A stretch of 63,934 nt of DNA, filler included, from Ministeria vibrans ATCC 50519 (Eukaryota; Protista; Filasterea), in NCBI GenBank assembly GCA_943704425.1. It is 7 parts of 7 records of this genome, joined end to end, with 100 filler letters (N's around TTAATTAATTAA, not from the genome) between each part and the next. Parts side by side here need not be neighbours in the genome. Positions count along the whole stretch, not along the records: positions 19,849 to 26,844 come from CALSCP010002854.1; 6 more parts are not named here. The stretch is one strand, 5' to 3'. The notes beneath the pieces are model-generated. The model saw only the letters and a program-made list of their open reading frames with translations. It searched no databases and had not been told where the DNA came from. The translations under genes were made by a program, and so were the position numbers. Shown one piece after another: positions 2,698-26,844 of this stretch (positions are counted from its first letter, which is position 1; every line of letters begins with the position of its first letter).

Positions 2698-3828
<1,131 letters not shown>

Positions 3829-19702: not shown

Positions 19703-20627
19703 ATGTTTGTATTGTGCGTTGTGCCAGTGTGTGTCTGTGCGTCCTGAGNNNNNNNNNNNNNNNNNNNNNNNNNNNNNNNNNNNNNNNNNNNNTTAATTAA
19801 TTAANNNNNNNNNNNNNNNNNNNNNNNNNNNNNNNNNNNNNNNNNNNNGGAGGGCGCCGGTGGACTCGGTGCAGTACAGCGTGCAGCTGCCGAGGAAGCC
19901 CACGGCCTCGTCGACGTGTTAGATGATGATCTCGTCAAAATGAACACGACTTGAAATTTTTTTTATTTTATTTTTTCAATTTTTTTTTTTTTCAATTTTG
20001 AATGTCTAAAGTCGCCCTATCGTCAGTAGGCTACATGAATGAGTGTTGTAGAAGCCTCCGATGAGGGTAAAAGGTACTTTTCTTGCTCCTCAACGAGGTA
20101 CCAGGTCAGAAATCCGATTTTGGTTATAACCGGAGTGGGACAGAGTCCGGCGCACTCCGGGAATCCTTACAATATTAACTGATTTTACTGAAGTGTCTTC
20201 AATGAGTGTCTCCCCTACTGGTCAATCGTGTAAGAGAGACCATGTATGTATAGCTTTCCTTGTCTTATCCATCATCCATGTCTGTCGACGAACTTTCCTC
20301 GTTGCCCTCTCTCTCTAGCAGCCAAGTAGCCCCCTCTGTCGTTCCAACACCTGCATTATTTTATCCCTAACCCTACCCCCAACACCTGCATTATTCTATT
20401 CACCGCAGAGGAAGCTAAACCGTTCATCTTCTGTGGTGTTTTACTGCTTTTTTTTTTTTTTTTCTCGTCTGTTCCGTGCTTTCTCAGGGATCGATTCAAC
20501 GAACCTTTCCTTCCACCATCCATGTATCAATCTTTGCTTCGTTGACGTAGCAGGCCTAATCGTTCTGTTGCGGTTTAGCTTTTTTCTTTTTTCTTTTCTC
20601 TTTAAACATAATTCATCCTCTTCTCAG

Positions 20628-23600
20628 GGATCGCCAGTCTGCGACGGCCCTATCGCCAAGGCCTTGTTCTCGCCCGCTGCGACTACAGCAAACCAGTCTA
20701 CCCGCACACTGCGAATACACCGACGCCCCAGGCCTATCTTAGCAATTTGAAGGGTGCTTTGATTGCTGCTCGCAACACTGCGATTGGCATGCTTCAGAAC
20801 GGATACGACATTGTCTCCGTGCTCGCCGACAAGGCCCTCGCCCCAGACGGATCCCTGCCCTACGGCGATGCGACGTCATTCTTTGGCGAGAAACCCCAGT
20901 TGGCGCCAATGAAGGAGGCAGACGAGCATTTGCGCGCAGCGTTCGCCAAGGACGCGATCATCACCGGTCGCCTCCTCTGGCATGTTGCACCAGAACTCCC
21001 GCGCGTCGACATTGTCACATGCATTGACACATTGGCAAAGGCGAAACCTACCGTCAACGGCCAGGTCAAGGGCCCCGCCGGCACCACCACCGAGCTTACA
21101 GTCTACCTTGTTGGGCACGGCATCAAGGACGCACAGGAGCGCTTCACTCTCGCCTATGATGTGACTCTGGCGCCCTACCTCGCCGGTGTGAAGGTTCTTG
21201 GCGGCTACACCATTTCACAGCTGCTCGAGGATCTCGCGCTCAACACACGCTGGCAGCATCTGCTCATCATTGCGGACGCGTGCAACGCCGGTGCGGCTCT
21301 CAACAACGACTGCTACGTGCCAGAGAAGGCAGAGACGTTCATTGACTCGCATTGGCACTCTGCGTACCACCGTGCGTCGTACCAGTTCATTGGATCGTCG
21401 CTCAACGACACACAGGGACAGTCAGCGGAGGCGTGGCAGGGGACCCTCTTCTCGATGGCAATGGACGGAGTACTCTGGTGCACTGACCCGACCGCGTTTG
21501 CTGGTGGGGCCAGCACACAGCCGTACAACTGGGCGACAGCGAGCTATGTTGGAGATAAGCTGCGCGACAGCATTAACTCAATCATGCAGCAACTCTACCC
21601 TGGTGCCACCGACCTTGCACCTACGTGTGTGCACGGGCGTCTCAACCTCGCTGAGCACGCACCCACGCTCTTCAAGTTGCGCAACCTGGGCCAGTTTCTA
21701 TTTGTCCGTCACAACGCACTGGCACAGTGGCCCTACGAGGAAGTCAACCATCCACCTATTCAGGTGAGTGGAGCGACTTACTGTGAAGGATAGCGCTTCA
21801 GTTCTTAACCACCTTCATAGGGTCTTCATCCGATGGCAGGTGCCACTGCCATTACAACCACCTGCCATGGCAACCAAGTGTCGTACCAATCCGCTGCCGA
21901 TCCCTCCTGGAATCGACAGGTGGATTTTGGCCGCTACGACTCCAGTCGCTTTATCACCATAGTTTTTCCTCAGACGAGTCTGAGCGGCGAAGATCTCATC
22001 GAGCGTGTGAAAAAAAGCTTTGACCTTTGCACCCTCCCTCACCTCCCGTCGGACCTGCGATGGCAAGCGCGAGACGACATCACCTGTACTCTTCTCACGG
22101 ACCTACCTTTTGGCGACTCTGAGCGGCGTTTCGTGCTGCTTGCTGTGTGCACCAGTGATGAATACGAGACTGCTCTTCGCTTTGTCACCAAGGCGTATCA
22201 ACCTGGCCTCGTCCTCGCCTTTTCACCTTCCCCTAACACAGACAGCGTCGACGTCCTCTTTGGGTCGTCCTTCACCCCCTCAACACATCACATGCCTCAG
22301 CCTCTTTCCGCAGAGATGACTGATATTCTCTCCAACGTGCGGCTCACACGCTTCAGTGATCACCAAGCCCTTGCTCATCTGTCGCCCAACGTCCGATGCA
22401 TTGATGTCGCACAAACCCAACCCACCTCTACCGAGCCTCTCTGCATCACTCTCTCTTCAGTGTGGGATATGTTCAAGTTTCTCAACCATCGTCATTCCGA
22501 CTCTCCGATGAGGTCACCGCTCGAAAACTTTCTTGCCAATATCCGTTGGCTCTTATCCTTGCCTGCCGTCACCCCGACATGCACATTGTGCAACATCATT
22601 CCAGCGTGTGTGATCGTTCCTTTTCCTACGGATGTGCTCTTCCGCAATGACGACACAATTCGCGCCGGTCTCTATGCAGCTGCCCCGCTTTTTACGTCCC
22701 CGATGTCTTTGCCACACATCCCTGTGAAGCTAGTGGAGTTCTCGCTGACACTCAACACCGATCTTACAGTTGACGTCACTGAAGTGCAGATGGCGCTGAG
22801 AAACCTTACCTTCCGAAACCTTGCCCACAATGGCGGATTCCTGTACCACGCTGGTACTCGTCCTGGTTGCGTCATTCTTGACTTTATTGGTTCACTGAGC
22901 TACGTCTGGGCCCTACGAGCACACCTTGCCTGCAATGGTGGGTTGCTTGAGGGCATGGAGGTCATGGACATTGTGGTGGTTGGTGCCGGTGAGTGCAAGG
23001 CAATTGAGCACCAGAAAGTTTTCGAAACTCAAATTGGCACCTCAAGTCAGAGCGAAGTACGGGTGACAGAATCTGCTCGTAAGAAACCCAACAGAACCAC
23101 TCGCACCAAACTGTCTTCTGATCACATCTATTCACACGATAGCAACTCGGAGCTCCGTTGACTCATCGATTGATGCGACGCTTGGAGAGCTTCAAACAAT
23201 GAGTATGGGCGTGAGCGTTGGACGAAAAGAAAAAAAAACAGAAAAAATACGCTACAGTTTCGACGTCAAATGCGTCCGTCCCGGCGTGAGTGGAGCAAGC
23301 GAAACAACACTGACGGTGCTTTCAGATGCCGTTGATGTGATAGTGAACCGAGAGGTAAGAGTGAACCATTGCACTTTCGTCTTTTGGAGACGAAAAAGTT
23401 TTTTTTTTCTCAGTTCGAGACGATTCCCATGCGTCAAATCTGGGCCATAGACGGATTGGCTGAAGAGGCCAACCATGGCCGCATCAGTGGTGAGCATATT
23501 TTTGCGATTTGGACGGGATGCAGCTTTCTGCCACCAACCAAGGAACGTCCGCTTTCTGCTCACTACTTCGCGGTGAAGTCTCGTGACGAACGCAGCGAGA

Positions 23601-24266
23601 TCATCCAAACCCTTCGCCACAGTAGGAGCAACTCAATTTCATCGTCAGTACTTGTCGTTTCATTCCTTCTCGTTTGTCTAGAATGGGCCGAATTGTGCGG
23701 TAAAAATCTTTTGAAGAATACCCATGTTGATTTTTTTTGCAACGGAAAGGTACGAAAGAGTACGCCTGGACAAGAATGTCTCACAAAAGTGATGAACACC
23801 GTGCATCCCGCTCACTTGAATGTACCCTTTGCAGTATCGGTGTTGTCACGGCGCGCTTGGCAGTGCAGGGTGCAAGTGGGTCGTGCTTCCGCACGCACAG
23901 ACGTTCACCAAAACCTATTCGCCAGCAGTCGAATTCTCGGTCCGCTACCGCATTCTGAAGACAGGCCGTCTGGATCGCGACGAGGAGGTTGGCACACTCA
24001 CGACGGGAACGCTGGTGATTCGTCCACAGCACAGCGTTGCCCTCTTTGACGCCCGTGATCGCCTCGTGCCCGTCCAAGAAGAAAACCACGCAGCTCTGGG
24101 TGCACTATGGGACTGCACTCCAACGTCTGGCAAGCGCCACACCCACAGCATCACGGGCTTCACTGTGAAGAATGAGAGCGATCCTGAGAATGGTACCGTT
24201 GTGATCACTGTGGGCGTGCCTCCCGAACAACACACCTACAGGGTTTTGGTGAGAATGACAATATAG
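20628..24266 (+). CDS. Caspase-like peptidase C14 fused to an uncharacterised middle region, a PH domain and a BTK-type zinc finger (5' end unresolved)
   Basis: C14 motifs GLVLARCDY, LSNLKGA, VYLVGHG (His), IIADACNAG (Cys) and GTLFSMAM. Introns 21764-21820, 23079-23142, 23355-23413, 23622-23681 and 23750-23834 are all GT-AG and keep frame. PH-like end HYFAVKSRDERSEIIQTLRH is followed by THVDFFCNGK|YRCCHGALGSAGC. Confidence 0.8.
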
Positions 24267-24636
24267 CACTCACACTTGATAAATAAACCACGTTCTCTTG
24301 TAGCACATTCGGCCGGACACTGTGCTCTGTGTCTTCAATGGAGACGAAACAGAAGGGAAGATCCTGGATCAGTCGGTTCATCTTTCAGCGGTAAGTCCCA
24401 ATGATGAAGCAGACAGTTTTTCCATTTCCAAAGGTACTCACAGTCAGGTTTATCGGCCTTTAGGCGGGTGGTACACTGAAAGGTGAAATTCGCGTGATTG
24501 TCGAACCCGGGAAATATGGGGATGTGAGGGAGGGCAGGTACAGGGAGGAGTTGGCGCGACGGGGCTATGATGATGCAGAGCCAAATATTCATGTTGGTGG
24601 CACGCGTGCTGAAGATCGTGTGTCATCTCATGCGCC

Positions 24637-24934
24637 CGCGGCTGCGGCTGCGGCTGCGGCTGCGGCTGCAGGCCGTGCATCCCCGGCAGCACAGGGTCGC
24701 TACGATCAGGCTGAAGGGCGTGCGTCACCTCGTGCGGCTGCTGCTGCGGCTGCGGCTGCAGGCCGTGCATCCCCGGCAGCACAGGGTCGCTACGATCAGG
24801 CTGAAGGGCGTGCATCACCTCGTGCGGCTGCGGCTGCGGCTGCAGGCCGTGCATCCCCGGCAGCACAGGGTCGCTACGATCAGGCTGAAGGGCGTGCGTC
24901 ACCTCGTGCGGCTGCGGCTGCGGCGGCTGCTGCA
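24637..24934. repeat. GC-rich minisatellite, 3 units of about 87-93 bp with variable (GCGGCT)n tracts; open in several frames
   Basis: GGCCGTGCATCCCCGGCAGCACAGGGTCGCTACGATCAGGCTGAAGGGCGTGC occurs three times; coding strand uncertain. Confidence 0.85.
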
Positions 24935-25205
24935 GACGCACCTTCCCGTCCTTCTCATAGCAGTATGGCTGAGGCCCTCGCCTCTGAGAAGAAGTAGAAT
25001 GAAAGCCCCACTATTCTCTATATCCCGGCACAGCTACTGGAGCAAGAAGATCTAGTTGTGTTGTGACTTTGCGAAACAGAAAATGGCGCGCAATGTGACT
25101 CAGTGTGTTTTCAATGTGTATCGAACGGGTCGAGTGGTGGAGTAAACAAAAAAAAAATTGTGTTTTTGAATGAATACTTTTTCTTCTCTGTTTGAAATTT
25201 TGCAA

Positions 25206-25589
25206 ATGAGCGACTCTGACTCAGTACTAGAAACCTCCGACGACATATTTTACCACACTGGACCAAGAGAACTTGTCGACACGGCCACTCTCTTCGCCGA
25301 CGAAGCGAAATTTCTGTCTTCTACCACCGAGCAAGTGTTTCATCCTATGAAGTCACTTGAGCTGCTTCCGCACACTGCGAGTGTTACCAGCAACGGCAAA
25401 ACCATGACCATCAAGATTCAAACAGAGAGGGCCGAGTTTAGCGAGAGCTTTGAACTACCGGACCATGACCGATCGGAAAACATCGAAACACGCGTTTCAC
25501 GTTGCGCACACAAGTGCATTAAGCAGGTTGGATACCAAGATTCTCGTCTGGCTTGCTTCGCACCCCCCCTGCAAATTCATCAATTGTAG
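25206..25589 (+). CDS. Hypothetical intronless protein (about 127 aa)
   Basis: ATG-initiated ORF with protein-like composition (MSDSDSVLETSDDIFYHTGPRELV...); no recognisable motif. Confidence 0.35.
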   Translation: MSDSDSVLETSDDIFYHTGPRELVDTATLFADEAKFLSSTTEQVFHPMKSLELLPHTASVTSNGKTMTIKIQTERAEFSESFELPDHDRSENIETRVSRCAHKCIKQVGYQDSRLACFAPPLQIHQL

Positions 25590-25665
25590 ATCAATAAATA
25601 CACACATTCTCGGGAAATCCCAAATTCAGCCGCTCGATGCACGGTAGCTCGATGCACGGTACGGA

Positions 25666-26530
25666 GTAATCGCCTTCTTTTGATTGTTTTTTGTTGTTTT
25701 TGCGACCACAGGAGAAATCGCCTTTGGCACTTTTTCTGATTTCTCTTATAAGACGTAGATGGGGAAAAAGTGCCAGAGCTAAACATAGACACCCACACAT
25801 TCACGGATAAAAGTCACAAAATTGATCAAAAAATATCCAAACAAGCAGAAAGTAATCGCCTTCTTTTGACTGATTTTTGTTGTTTTTGCGGCCACAGGTT
25901 TGGCACTTTTTCTGATTTCTCTTATAAGACGTAGATGGGGAAAAAGTGCCAGAGCTAAACATAGACACCCANNNNNNNNTTCTTTTGACTGATTTTTGTT
26001 GTTTTTGCGGCCACAGGTTTGGCACTTTTTCTGATTTCTCTTATAAGACGTAGATGGGGAAAAAGTGCCAGAGCTAAACATAGACACCCTCACATTCACG
26101 GATAAAAGTCACAAAATTGATCAAAAAATATCCAAACAAGCAGAAAGTAATCGCCTTCTTTTGATTGTTTTTTGTTGTTTTTGCGACCACAGGAAATCGC
26201 CTTTGGCACTTTTTCTGATTTCTCTTATAAGACGTAGATGGAGAAAAAGTGCCAGAGCTAAACATAGACACCCACACATTCACGGATAAAAGTCACAAAG
26301 TTGATCAAAAAATATCCAAACAAGCAGAAAGTAATCGCCTTCTTTTGATTGTTTTTTGTTGTTTTTGCGACCACAGGAGAAATCGCCTTTGGCACTTTTT
26401 CTGATTTCTCTTATAAGACGTAGATGGAGAAAAAGTGCCAGAGCTAAACATTGACACCCACACATTCACGGATAAAAGTCACAAAGTTGATCAAAAAATA
26501 TCCAAACAAGCAGAAAGTAATCGCCTTCTT
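25666..26530. repeat. Tandem satellite, about 5 units of 176-186 bp, each with an internal inverted repeat
   Basis: GTAATCGCCTTCTT starts at 25666, 25852, 26147, 26331 and 26517 (one more unit is broken by a small gap); each unit has TGGCACTTTTTC...TCTTATAAGA...GAAAAAGTGCCA. Confidence 0.95.
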
Positions 26531-26844
26531 GTGTTCTTCTTTGCATTGTCTTAGGGAGTAAGATTTGTGAATAGTGAGAAATCGTGAGTGACTGATTTGG
26601 ACTGTGTTTTGGACTCTTGTGTTCTTCTTTGCATTGTCTTAGCATGGGTAAGATTTGTCAATAGTGAGAAATCGTGAGTGCCTGATTTAGACTGTGTTTT
26701 GGACTCTTGTGTTCTTCTTTGCATTGTCTTAGCATGTAAGATTTGTCAATAGTGAGAAATCGTGAGTGACTGATTTGGACTGTGTTTTGGACTCTTGTGT
26801 TCTTCTTTTCATTGTCTTAGGGTGTAAGATTTGTCAATAGTGAG
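26529..26844. repeat. Second tandem satellite, about 3.5 units of 88-90 bp, running into a gap
   Basis: GTGTTCTTCTTT starts at 26531, 26619, 26709 and 26797. Confidence 0.95.

Follow-up and report, generated by a model that had tools for sequence, protein, structure and literature searches.

Exon structure and extent of the locus

In the window, a stretch of 63,934 nucleotides from the filasterean Ministeria vibrans ATCC 50519 (assembly GCA_943704425.1), a caspase-like region is followed on the same strand by a PH-like region and a BTK-type zinc motif. The question raised by this locus is whether the two halves are made as one protein, as the initial annotation had claimed for positions 20628-24266, or belong to two abutting genes. 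The exon structure is real, as the exons are kept and the introns lost in the comparison with relatives on four contigs (L001-L004) from two ENA metagenomes. The features are as follows:

20039..20229, plus strand: candidate first mini-exons within this interval (ATG 20039 with donor 20067, or ATG 20202 with donor 20230)
20628..21763, plus strand: exon 1, divergent caspase-like (clan CD) domain
20660-20686, plus strand: strand 1 of exon 1, GLVLARCDY
21764..21820, plus strand: intron 1 (GTGAGT...ATAG, 57 nt), containing an in-frame stop
21821..23078, plus strand: exon 2, orphan region of about 390-420 residues; may end at the stronger donor 22989
23079..23142, plus strand: putative intron 2 of 64 nt (alternatively 154 nt, 22989-23142)
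23143..23354, plus strand: exon 3, linker containing a run rich in Lys; from about 23244 to 23354, the PH-like domain (N-terminal half)
23355-23413, plus strand: intron 3, 59 nt
23414..23621, plus strand: exon 4, C-terminal half of the PH-like domain and closing helix
23622-23681, plus strand: intron 4, 60 nt
23682..23749, plus strand: exon 5, first BTK half, Hx2Fx3GK (His codon 23723-23725)
23750..23834, plus strand: intron 5, 85 nt, GT-AG, dividing the BTK motif between GK and Y
23835..24248, plus strand: exon 6, second BTK half (Cys codons 23841-23846 and 23871-23873), then a strand-rich domain
24249-24303 and 24391-24463, plus strand: introns 6 and 7, GT-AG, flanking exon 7
24304..24390, plus strand: exon 7, strand-rich domain continued, 100% (L003) and 69% (L004) identical
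24464..24997, plus strand: exon 8, last part of the strand-rich domain, Ala-rich repeats of 28-30 residues (about 3.3 copies), stop TAG 24995-24997

Neither of the boundaries first proposed could be kept. Position 20628 is an acceptor site rather than a start codon, and a 3' end at 24266 arises from reading through into intron 6, beyond which lie exons 7 and 8. Exon 1 must be preceded by a small upstream exon, since its first in-frame ATG does not occur before residue 54 and yet residues 1-53 are conserved in L001. This relative has an acceptor at the identical place and phase, with an ATG mini-exon upstream. Both mini-exon candidates in the window leave one base, which matches the need of the exon-1 acceptor; their donors score low (4.4 and 3.9). 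An Rfam search gave no match. Taken as a whole, a single gene of at least nine exons, running from about 20039 or 20202 to 24997 and encoding a soluble protein of about 1,300 residues, is a tentative model to which we give slightly less than an even chance.

The five GT-AG introns described between the protease part and the second BTK half are all present, but the claim that they preserve the frame holds only for the first and fourth, whose lengths are multiples of three; introns 2, 3 and 5 (64, 59 and 85 nt) do not preserve the frame but restore it. Support is good for four of the five, the weak one being the second, which would fuse the two halves. In L002, intron 1 is found at an identical position in phase 0, and the protein similarity picks up directly after it. 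Introns 3, 4 and 5 agree in position and phase with those of L004, in which the intron sequences are unrelated; for intron 5, in phase 0, the counterparts measure 85 nt in L003 and 99 nt in L004.

The caspase-like domain

The two motifs on which the protease assignment had been based were located as described: VYLVGHG at 21101-21121, with the His163 codon at 21116-21118, and IADACNAG at 21269-21292, with the Cys218 codon at 21281-21283. Clan CD is characterised by a His and then a Cys at the ends of hydrophobic strands, about 40-60 residues apart, and this is the arrangement of exon 1, in which both residues stand behind hydrophobic strands, 55 residues apart; the two motifs are invariant in L001 and L002. 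Further downstream are the p10-like blocks YQFIGSS and GTLFSMAMD.

Among the library models, only NCBIfam NF047832 ('caspase, EACC1-associated type') matched exon 1 (E=8.2e-6, residues 145-232, profile positions 61-144 of 211), over a stretch that includes both catalytic residues. The paralogous copy on L001 matched the same model with E=7.4e-7. However, the score for exon 1 (25.5 bits) is far under the curated cut-off of 140 bits, and the match supports homology at the level of the superfamily rather than membership of the family. No open reading frame for an EACC1 transmembrane partner was found in the upstream 780 nt, and the context is eukaryotic. Pfam returned zero families for exon 1 and its homologues at E<=10, PF00656 (Peptidase C14) included, and PDB sequence searches with exon 1 (phmmer and profile) gave no real match. 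The AF2 model of exon 1, built on a four-sequence alignment, was unusable (pLDDT 31.8), and only the order of strands and helices fits the caspase-hemoglobinase fold. The C14 assignment is supported in the sense of a bacterial-type caspase-superfamily domain, whose dyad is conserved in three homologues, and is not established in the Pfam sense of PF00656. That the domain is of bacterial type rather than a classical caspase was borne out, NF047832 being the only model to detect it.

The domain is also very rare. A full HMMER search with exon 1 retrieved just two proteins (P0001 and P0002) among 1.84 billion representatives, and a profile word search at E<=10 returned the same two. No bacterial relative was found by HMMER or in a scan of GTDB genomes; tblastn against plasmids gave noise only, and degenerate-pattern scans of JGI metagenomes, GTDB genomes and IMG/VR gave nothing.

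Such extreme divergence would fit a domain that is caspase-like in fold yet inactive, serving as a pseudo-enzyme or scaffold. Many caspase domains of bacterial conflict systems are inactive, and about 70% of those in the effector position of vWA-MoxR systems are reported to be catalytically so (PMC7159879). Against this, the three copies show no change in the His, the Cys, the neighbouring Gly residues or the downstream blocks, although overall identity is only 57-62%. We regard an inactive domain as unlikely.

The middle region encoded by exon 2 is 44-46% identical to L002:922-2079, the likeness ending near 22988. It matched no protein family, PDB entry or defence-library model, the sole PADLOC match (NsnC, E=0.054) being at chance level, and its AF2 model was likewise unusable (pLDDT 34.4).

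The PH-like domain and the BTK motif

The landmarks given for the second half of the locus were all recovered: HYFAVKSRDERSEIIQTLRH is the end of exon 4, at 23620, THVDFFCNGK closes exon 5 at 23749, and YRCCHGALGSAGC is the start of exon 6, at 23835. The BTK motif (PF00779 / IPR001562) is defined by one His and three Cys ligands in the arrangement H-x11-CC-x10-C. Counted across exons 5 and 6, the window has these four ligands as H-x10-CC-x8-C, with 11 residues from His to the first Cys and 9 from the second Cys to the last. In BTK itself, the distance from His143 to Cys154 is likewise 11 residues and the second spacer is 10 (PMC3836457). Chance would yield 0.0175 occurrences of the half motif [YFW]xCCx6-10GC in the six frames of this sequence piece. 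There is one, immediately downstream of an acceptor AG and 85 nt downstream of the donor that closes the Hx2[FYW]x3Gx half. A chance origin of the motif is excluded.

Conservation in the relatives points in the same direction. In exon 5, neither L003 nor L004 differs from the window at the H, F, G and K, and the Cys that is not a ligand is not conserved; in exon 6, the Y, CC and GC are invariant in both. Ligands, spacing and intron position remain unchanged in L004, a homologue with only 57% identity. A word search with exon 6 gave two more relatives. The dN/dS ratio was 0.28 for exon 6 against L003 and 0.2-0.28 on the exons carrying the BTK motif; on the PH exons it was about 1 or higher, as calculated from few sites. 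Exon 8, in which a tandem repeat with a period of 84/90 nt occupies 24643-24935, is 84% identical in L003.

PH domains fold into a sandwich of seven strands, closed off by a C-terminal helix that bears a conserved Trp. A pattern of strands and helix can be read by eye in exons 3 and 4, neither of which matched a profile on its own, and the Trp position is occupied by Ile in the window and L003 and by Thr in L004. For exon 3, identity to L003 is 81% and the likeness to L004 is recognisable; exon 4 is 84% and 57% identical in L003 and L004, respectively, with IFAIWTGCSF and HYF..KS.DER invariant. A putative 40-nt intron at 23286-23325 was considered and rejected, since its removal would shift the frame and L003 and L004 conserve the protein sequence encoded there. 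No Pfam model, those for PH and BTK included, matched any single exon, nor did reading from exon 4 through intron 4 into exon 5 give a match; as intron 5 splits the BTK motif, the BTK profile was scanned against single exons only. PDB sequence and profile searches of the exons gave only chance matches, to fem-1 ankyrin and NR1D2. The motif begins about 20 residues after a PH-type closing helix, and since the TH zinc finger belongs to the PH fold itself (PMC13648279), a PH domain ahead of it is favoured. Of the PH and BTK assignment, then, the BTK-type zinc motif after a PH-like helix, conserved in L004, stands, and the PH fold did not find support in the single-exon model searches.

The missing model and PDB matches, the second spacer being one residue shorter than that of BTK, and the absent helix Trp might be taken to mean that the H...CC...GC pattern is a convergent zinc knuckle, preceded by something other than a PH domain and only superficially like the PH-TH module of Tec kinases. 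The misses say little, however, because matches of half length to a 30-residue model cannot reach significance. Six motif positions beyond the four ligands agree (F, G, K/Q-like, Y, G, GC), and the distance from His to Cys is that of BTK. In Tec kinases the motif lies about 20 residues past an amphipathic helix of the 'S.eER.e.i..l' type, and so it does here. Convergence is very improbable in our judgement.

A basic signature spread over strands 1 and 2, K-xn-(K/R)-x-R, marks phosphoinositide-binding PH domains. In the window and L003 there is only K..R at this place; L004 has K-x7-RAR. The recruitment to membrane lipids proposed in the initial annotation is an inference.

One protein or two genes

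The fused reading depends on intron 2, or on its 154-nt alternative, since nothing else connects the protease half with the PH-BTK half. Its two possible donors lie at the 95th and 98th percentile and its acceptor at only the 57th. When the exon-2 frame is read through, it reaches a stop (TGA) at 23159-23161, and exon 3 contains in-frame ATGs at 23199 and 23205. Nor is the fusion seen in the relatives: L002 has a different C-terminus with no PH-BTK within 1,250 bp, and the 93% identity between L003 and the window breaks off right upstream of the PH domain, where L003 shares TTCGGAAAAATG with L004. In view of the weak acceptor, the stop at 23159, the ATG at 23199 and these relatives, the claim that protease and PH-BTK form one polypeptide is not established. 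L002 and L004 were also considered as the two ends of one gene; this was rejected, as the contigs do not overlap and L002 closes with a different domain and a stop.

According to the alternative reading, gene A (caspase-like domain and middle region) ends at TGA 23159-23161 and gene B (PH-like domain, BTK motif, strand-rich domain and Ala-rich tail) begins at ATG 23199; their adjacency would be fortuitous or due to co-regulation, and no fused protein would be made. Both the stop and the ATG exist, the interval 22990-23325 contains no good acceptor, and the caspase gene on L002 has another C-terminus. In L003 and L004 an ATG lies directly before the PH domain, in L004 after more than 300 nt of low-complexity sequence. 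Moreover, 23226-23250 is an A-rich run like those between genes in this piece, and the codon usage of 23199-23249 is not coding-like. On the other side, the spacer between stop and ATG would measure just 37 nt, compared with about 170-210 nt to the next downstream gene, and it lacks the T/A-run, low-GC signature of intergenic sequence. The segment 23145-23198 is coding-like in the PH frame, and 23078-23158 is not coding-like in the exon-2 frame. The sequence TTCGGAAAA ahead of the ATG in L003 and L004 resembles conserved coding sequence, which suggests that the genes on these contigs have upstream exons too, and donor-like GTGAGT repeats open the L004 contig. Two separate genes are a serious possibility, to which we would give somewhat better than one chance in three.

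One gene is favoured because the gap is only 37 nt, two strong in-phase donors are available for the fusing intron, the acceptor side is coding-like, the putative intron is of typical size (64 nt, as against 55-85 nt for the other introns), and the ancestral ATG just before the PH domain, present in L003 and L004, is ATA in the window. We consider it slightly more likely than not that the caspase-like half and the PH-BTK half are in one protein.

Comparison with known systems and a possible mechanism

In bacterial EACC1 two-gene conflict systems, a constant caspase component occurs with varying C-terminal parts (Kaur et al. 2020, PMC7159879). The window gene resembles the EACC1 caspase (NF047832) in its N-terminal constant caspase, in C-terminal regions that vary between members and in its GHG / DAC-type dyad; it differs in being eukaryotic with introns, in scoring about 25 bits against a cut-off of 140, and in having no EACC1-like transmembrane partner upstream. 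Metacaspases and orthocaspases (Peptidase C14B) have a His-Cys dyad after hydrophobic strands, no long inter-subunit linker and a downstream 'Q.S.E ... G.F(S/T)' block. The domain in the window shares these features, with its 55-residue spacing, but it has VGHG and DACNAG instead of SGHG and DSCHSG, carries about 60 inserted residues ahead of the His strand and does not match PF00656.

The PH-TH module of Tec kinases (BTK, ITK, TEC; Monosiga MbTEC) likewise has Hx2Fx3GxYxCC...GC after the C-terminal PH helix, with His and Cys 11 residues apart. In contrast to these kinases, the window gene has no SH3-SH2-kinase part, its second spacer is 9 instead of 10, the helix Trp is replaced and the basic lipid-binding signature is absent. 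A further parallel is offered by the GAP1-family RasGAPs (RASA2, RASA3, RASA4), in which PH and Btk-type zinc finger form a portable targeting cassette on a non-kinase enzyme (PMC7588890). Here, too, the cassette would be joined to a non-kinase enzyme; the partner, however, would be a protease, and neither a C2 nor a RasGAP domain was found by Pfam.

The motifs, their conservation, the exon structure and the HMM likeness to a bacterial caspase family were observed; the following scheme infers in addition a fused transcript, the fold, zinc binding, lipid binding and activity. The protein would consist of a divergent bacterial-type caspase-superfamily domain with His163 and Cys218 intact, an orphan region of about 400 residues, a PH-TH module in which the BTK-type zinc finger stabilises the PH-like domain, a strand-rich domain and an Ala-rich tail. 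The PH-TH module might anchor the protein to a phosphoinositide in a membrane, to a soluble inositol phosphate or to a partner, and the resulting crowding or dimerisation could switch the protease on. Initiator caspases and metacaspases are activated by proximity, and BTK is activated by PIP3-driven dimerisation of its PH-TH module. The protease domain also stays constant across a small family in which the C-terminal parts vary from paralogue to paralogue (L001 and L002).

More speculatively, the locus could represent a eukaryotic family of a constant caspase with swappable C-terminal sensors, descended from or convergent with EACC1-type systems. The PH-TH cassette would then have been recombined recently onto the protease, with a breakpoint near 23243 and the old ATG now ATA, to give a proteolytic switch gated by phosphoinositide or inositol phosphate and possibly acting in cell death or immunity. 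We hold this extended scenario to be improbable in its entirety.

Significance

If the one-protein reading is correct, on which this point hinges, the locus combines known parts into a pair that, as far as we know, is new, a caspase-type protease with PH-BTK, and we lean slightly towards this conclusion. Caspase-type proteases are normally activated by protein scaffolds such as the apoptosome, the inflammasome and the CBM complex. A caspase-like enzyme wired to a PH-TH sensor of lipids or inositol phosphates would be a new coupling of second-messenger lipids to irreversible proteolysis. To our knowledge, the BTK zinc finger has so far been described in Tec kinases and GAP1 RasGAPs, and its occurrence here would place it on a third kind of enzyme. 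Moreover, the only detectable kin of this rare protease domain, apart from its two relatives among the representatives searched, are caspases of bacterial conflict systems. If the fusion is real, this combination of rarity and bacterial kinship would bear on the movement of cell-death machinery between bacteria and eukaryotes.

Gene structure and relatives

The piece at 19849-26844 appears to be nuclear DNA from a microbial eukaryote, and it shows no sign of being human. Its coding stretches are 54-60% G+C, with a high G+C share at third codon positions, its introns (55-85 nt) have GT-AG ends, and its AT-rich spacers contain long runs of T or A. Rfam gave no match in the piece.

Gene model of the caspase-like gene
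20628-21763, +, exon 1 (caspase-like domain)
21764-21820, +, intron 1
21821-23078, +, exon 2 (middle region)
23079-23142, +, intron 2 (putative)
23143-23354, +, exon 3 (PH-like)
23355-23413, +, intron 3
23414-23621, +, exon 4 (PH-like)
23622-23681, +, intron 4
23682-23749, +, exon 5 (BTK motif, first half)
23750-23834, +, intron 5
23835-24248, +, exon 6 (BTK motif, second half)
24249-24303, +, intron 6
24304-24390, +, exon 7
24391-24463, +, intron 7
24464-24997, +, exon 8, stop TAG

All sequence strings cited in the initial annotation were found in the window. It had ended the gene at 24266, but the model extends about 730 nt further, to the stop TAG of exon 8. Its five introns between the protease part and the second half of the BTK motif are retained; they had been called frame-preserving, but only two have lengths that are multiples of three. 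Exon 1 begins at an acceptor. An acceptor at the equivalent place and phase, with an ATG mini-exon upstream, is found in L001, a short metagenome contig carrying a paralogue, and the window holds two phase-compatible candidates for a first mini-exon (ATG at 20039 and 20202).

With exon 1 as query, a word search and a full HMMER search (1.84 billion representatives) returned only two related proteins (P0001 and P0002), and a word search with exon 6 returned P0003 and P0004. All four are encoded on short contigs (L001-L004) belonging to two ENA metagenome assemblies; no relatives were found in JGI metagenomes, GTDB prokaryotic genomes or IMG/VR. L001 has a protease domain 60% identical to that of the window, followed by unrelated sequence, and L002 is 58% identical in exon 1 and 44-46% in exon 2, with intron 1 at the equivalent place. 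L003 shows 93% DNA identity over 23243-24827, including introns. L004 encodes a protein homologue of exons 4-7 (55-69% identical), with exon blocks in the same order and introns unrelated in sequence that match in position and phase. The comparisons indicate that the gene family is real, conserved and under selection; with relatives limited to these contigs among the collections searched, it is extremely rare in current data.

An ORF of 139 aa with coding-like codon usage (25170-25589) lies on the same strand about 170-210 nt past the stop of the main gene; it has no family match and may continue beyond a GT at about 25527. At the left edge (19849-19921), about 22 codons of a minus-strand frame all have G or C as their third base, which probably marks the truncated end of an adjacent gene. 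The piece ends in two satellite-like tandem arrays, both AT-rich (about 37-38% G+C), at 25650-26530 (184-bp unit, at least 2.8 copies, 98% identity) and 26527-26844 (88-bp unit, 3.6 copies). Earlier copies of the 184-bp unit begin near 25650, and an N gap at 25973-25980 interrupts the array.

The caspase-like domain and the middle region

The NCBIfam model NF047832 ('caspase, EACC1-associated type') matched residues 145-232 (E=8.2e-6), a stretch that includes both catalytic motifs, and the L001 copy (E=7.4e-7). The protease domain had no match in Pfam, even at E<=10, or in PDB sequence and profile searches. A hydrophobic strand precedes each of His163 and Cys218, which are 55 residues apart. 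Neither residue varies among the three copies, nor do the downstream blocks YQFIGSS and GTLFSMAMD, which we take to be the counterpart of the metacaspase p10-like part. AlphaFold2 on exon 1 with a four-sequence alignment gave a model too poor to use (pLDDT 31.8), agreement with the fold being limited to strand and helix order. Judged by sequence, exon 1 is a predicted caspase-superfamily domain of bacterial type, for which membership of Pfam C14 or the EACC1 family cannot be demonstrated. The C14 protease of the initial annotation is thus upheld at superfamily level, by NF047832 and the conserved His and Cys, but not as Pfam C14, and its resemblance to bacterial types agrees with the sole library match being a bacterial EACC1-associated caspase family.

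The middle region encoded by exon 2 (about 400 aa) has a conserved counterpart in L002. It had no match among families, PDB or the defence library, and its AF2 model was likewise too poor to use (pLDDT 34.4).

The PH-like domain and BTK motif

The pattern in exons 3 and 4, where strands lead into a closing helix ('S.DER.e.i..L' type), resembles a PH domain, with Ile or Thr in place of the usual helix Trp; neither exon alone was recognised in profile searches. The BTK motif proposed initially is indeed present, divided into Hx2Fx3GK in exon 5 and YxCCx7GC in exon 6, and none of its H, F, G, K, Y, CC and GC positions differs in the L004 copy (57% identical), in which a non-ligand Cys is substituted and the motif-splitting intron has a matching phase-0 position. 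The expected number of occurrences of the second half-motif across six reading frames of the piece is 0.0175; it was observed once, exactly at an exon start. Counted across exons 5 and 6 without joining them, the His lies 11 residues from the first Cys, equal to the distance between the BTK zinc ligands His143 and Cys154 (PMC3836457), whereas the second and last Cys are 9 residues apart here and 10 in BTK. Since published work treats the TH zinc finger as intrinsic to the PH fold (PMC13648279), the conserved motif argues for a predicted PH-TH module in exons 3-6.

Between the window and L003, dN/dS was 0.2-0.28 on exons 5 and 6, and about 0.9-2.4, from few sites, on the PH exons (23244-23620). 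Amino-acid changes cluster in the PH-like exons, and the BTK motif and strand-rich domain are constrained (0.2-0.28); selection on the PH surface that is relaxed or diversifying may account for this. The Ala-rich tail contains a coding tandem repeat (24643-24935; unit 84/90 nt, 3.3 copies, 'GRASPAAQGRYDQAEGRASPR'), which is present in L003 and absent from L004.

One protein or two

The BTK-type zinc motif and the caspase-like domain are both credible, and their fusion hangs on one splice, that of putative intron 2. Counting against one protein, the exon-2 frame meets a stop at 23159-23161, and the PH frame, open from 23067 onwards, has an ATG at 23199. In-phase donors GTGAGT (22989) and GTAAGA (23079) rank at the 98th and 95th percentiles of all GTs in the piece; the compatible acceptors, chiefly 23142, have scores close to the median over all AGs, and none before 23325 is good. 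Codon usage over 23199-23249, which is not coding-like, also speaks for two proteins. In favour of one protein, 23078-23158 does not look coding when read in the exon-2 frame, and 23145-23198 does when read in the PH frame, with a score reached by just 1% of off-frame windows, so that the 64-nt intron is mildly favoured. The stop-to-ATG gap of 37 nt, against a spacer of 170-210 nt to the next gene, likewise supports one protein.

The relatives bear on the same question. The L002 gene has a different terminal domain and no PH-BTK, which counts against one protein and indicates that C-terminal parts vary within the family. In L002:2127-3111 the middle region is followed by a Ser/Pro-rich linker and this C-terminal domain of about 150 aa, which has no family match; the stop lies near 3109-3111. 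The identity with L003 ends abruptly at window 23243 / L003:36, just upstream of the PH-like domain, again unfavourable to one protein. Both L003 and L004 carry TTCGGAAAAATG upstream of the PH domain, and in the window ATA replaces its ATG. This end of identity has the appearance of a breakpoint of a recombination by which the PH-BTK cassette was moved. Taken together, the evidence for and against suggests a cassette that is mobile between genes and has only recently been joined to the protease gene here, and we lean slightly towards a single fused protein.

Parallels and proposed function

The N-terminal caspase domain is constant among the paralogues and the C-terminal parts are variable. 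This layout is like that of bacterial EACC1 conflict systems, for whose caspase component about 50 alternative C-terminal domains are described (PMC7159879), and NF047832, the only library match, points to the EACC1-associated caspase family too. The initial annotation had not recognised the architecture, and as far as our searches went, a caspase-like protease plus PH-BTK is unreported within the literature searched.

If one protein is made, the PH-TH module would recruit it to a membrane lipid, an inositol phosphate or a partner, and the ensuing proximity or dimerisation would activate the caspase-like domain. Caspases are activated by proximity, which the proposed scheme resembles. It would also resemble BTK, in which PH-TH dimerisation is driven by PIP3 (PMC10945472). 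We consider this the most likely working mechanism for a single protein. The basic lipid-binding signature is kept in L004 and absent from the window copy.

A P-loop NTPase fragment (L001:545-1072, minus strand) lies head-to-head with the caspase-like paralogue on L001, the first exon of that paralogue being a few hundred bases away, and matches AAA_16 (E=1.7e-5) and, faintly, nSTAND6. A STAND-type NTPase adjoining a caspase-like gene would suit a role in cell death or immunity.
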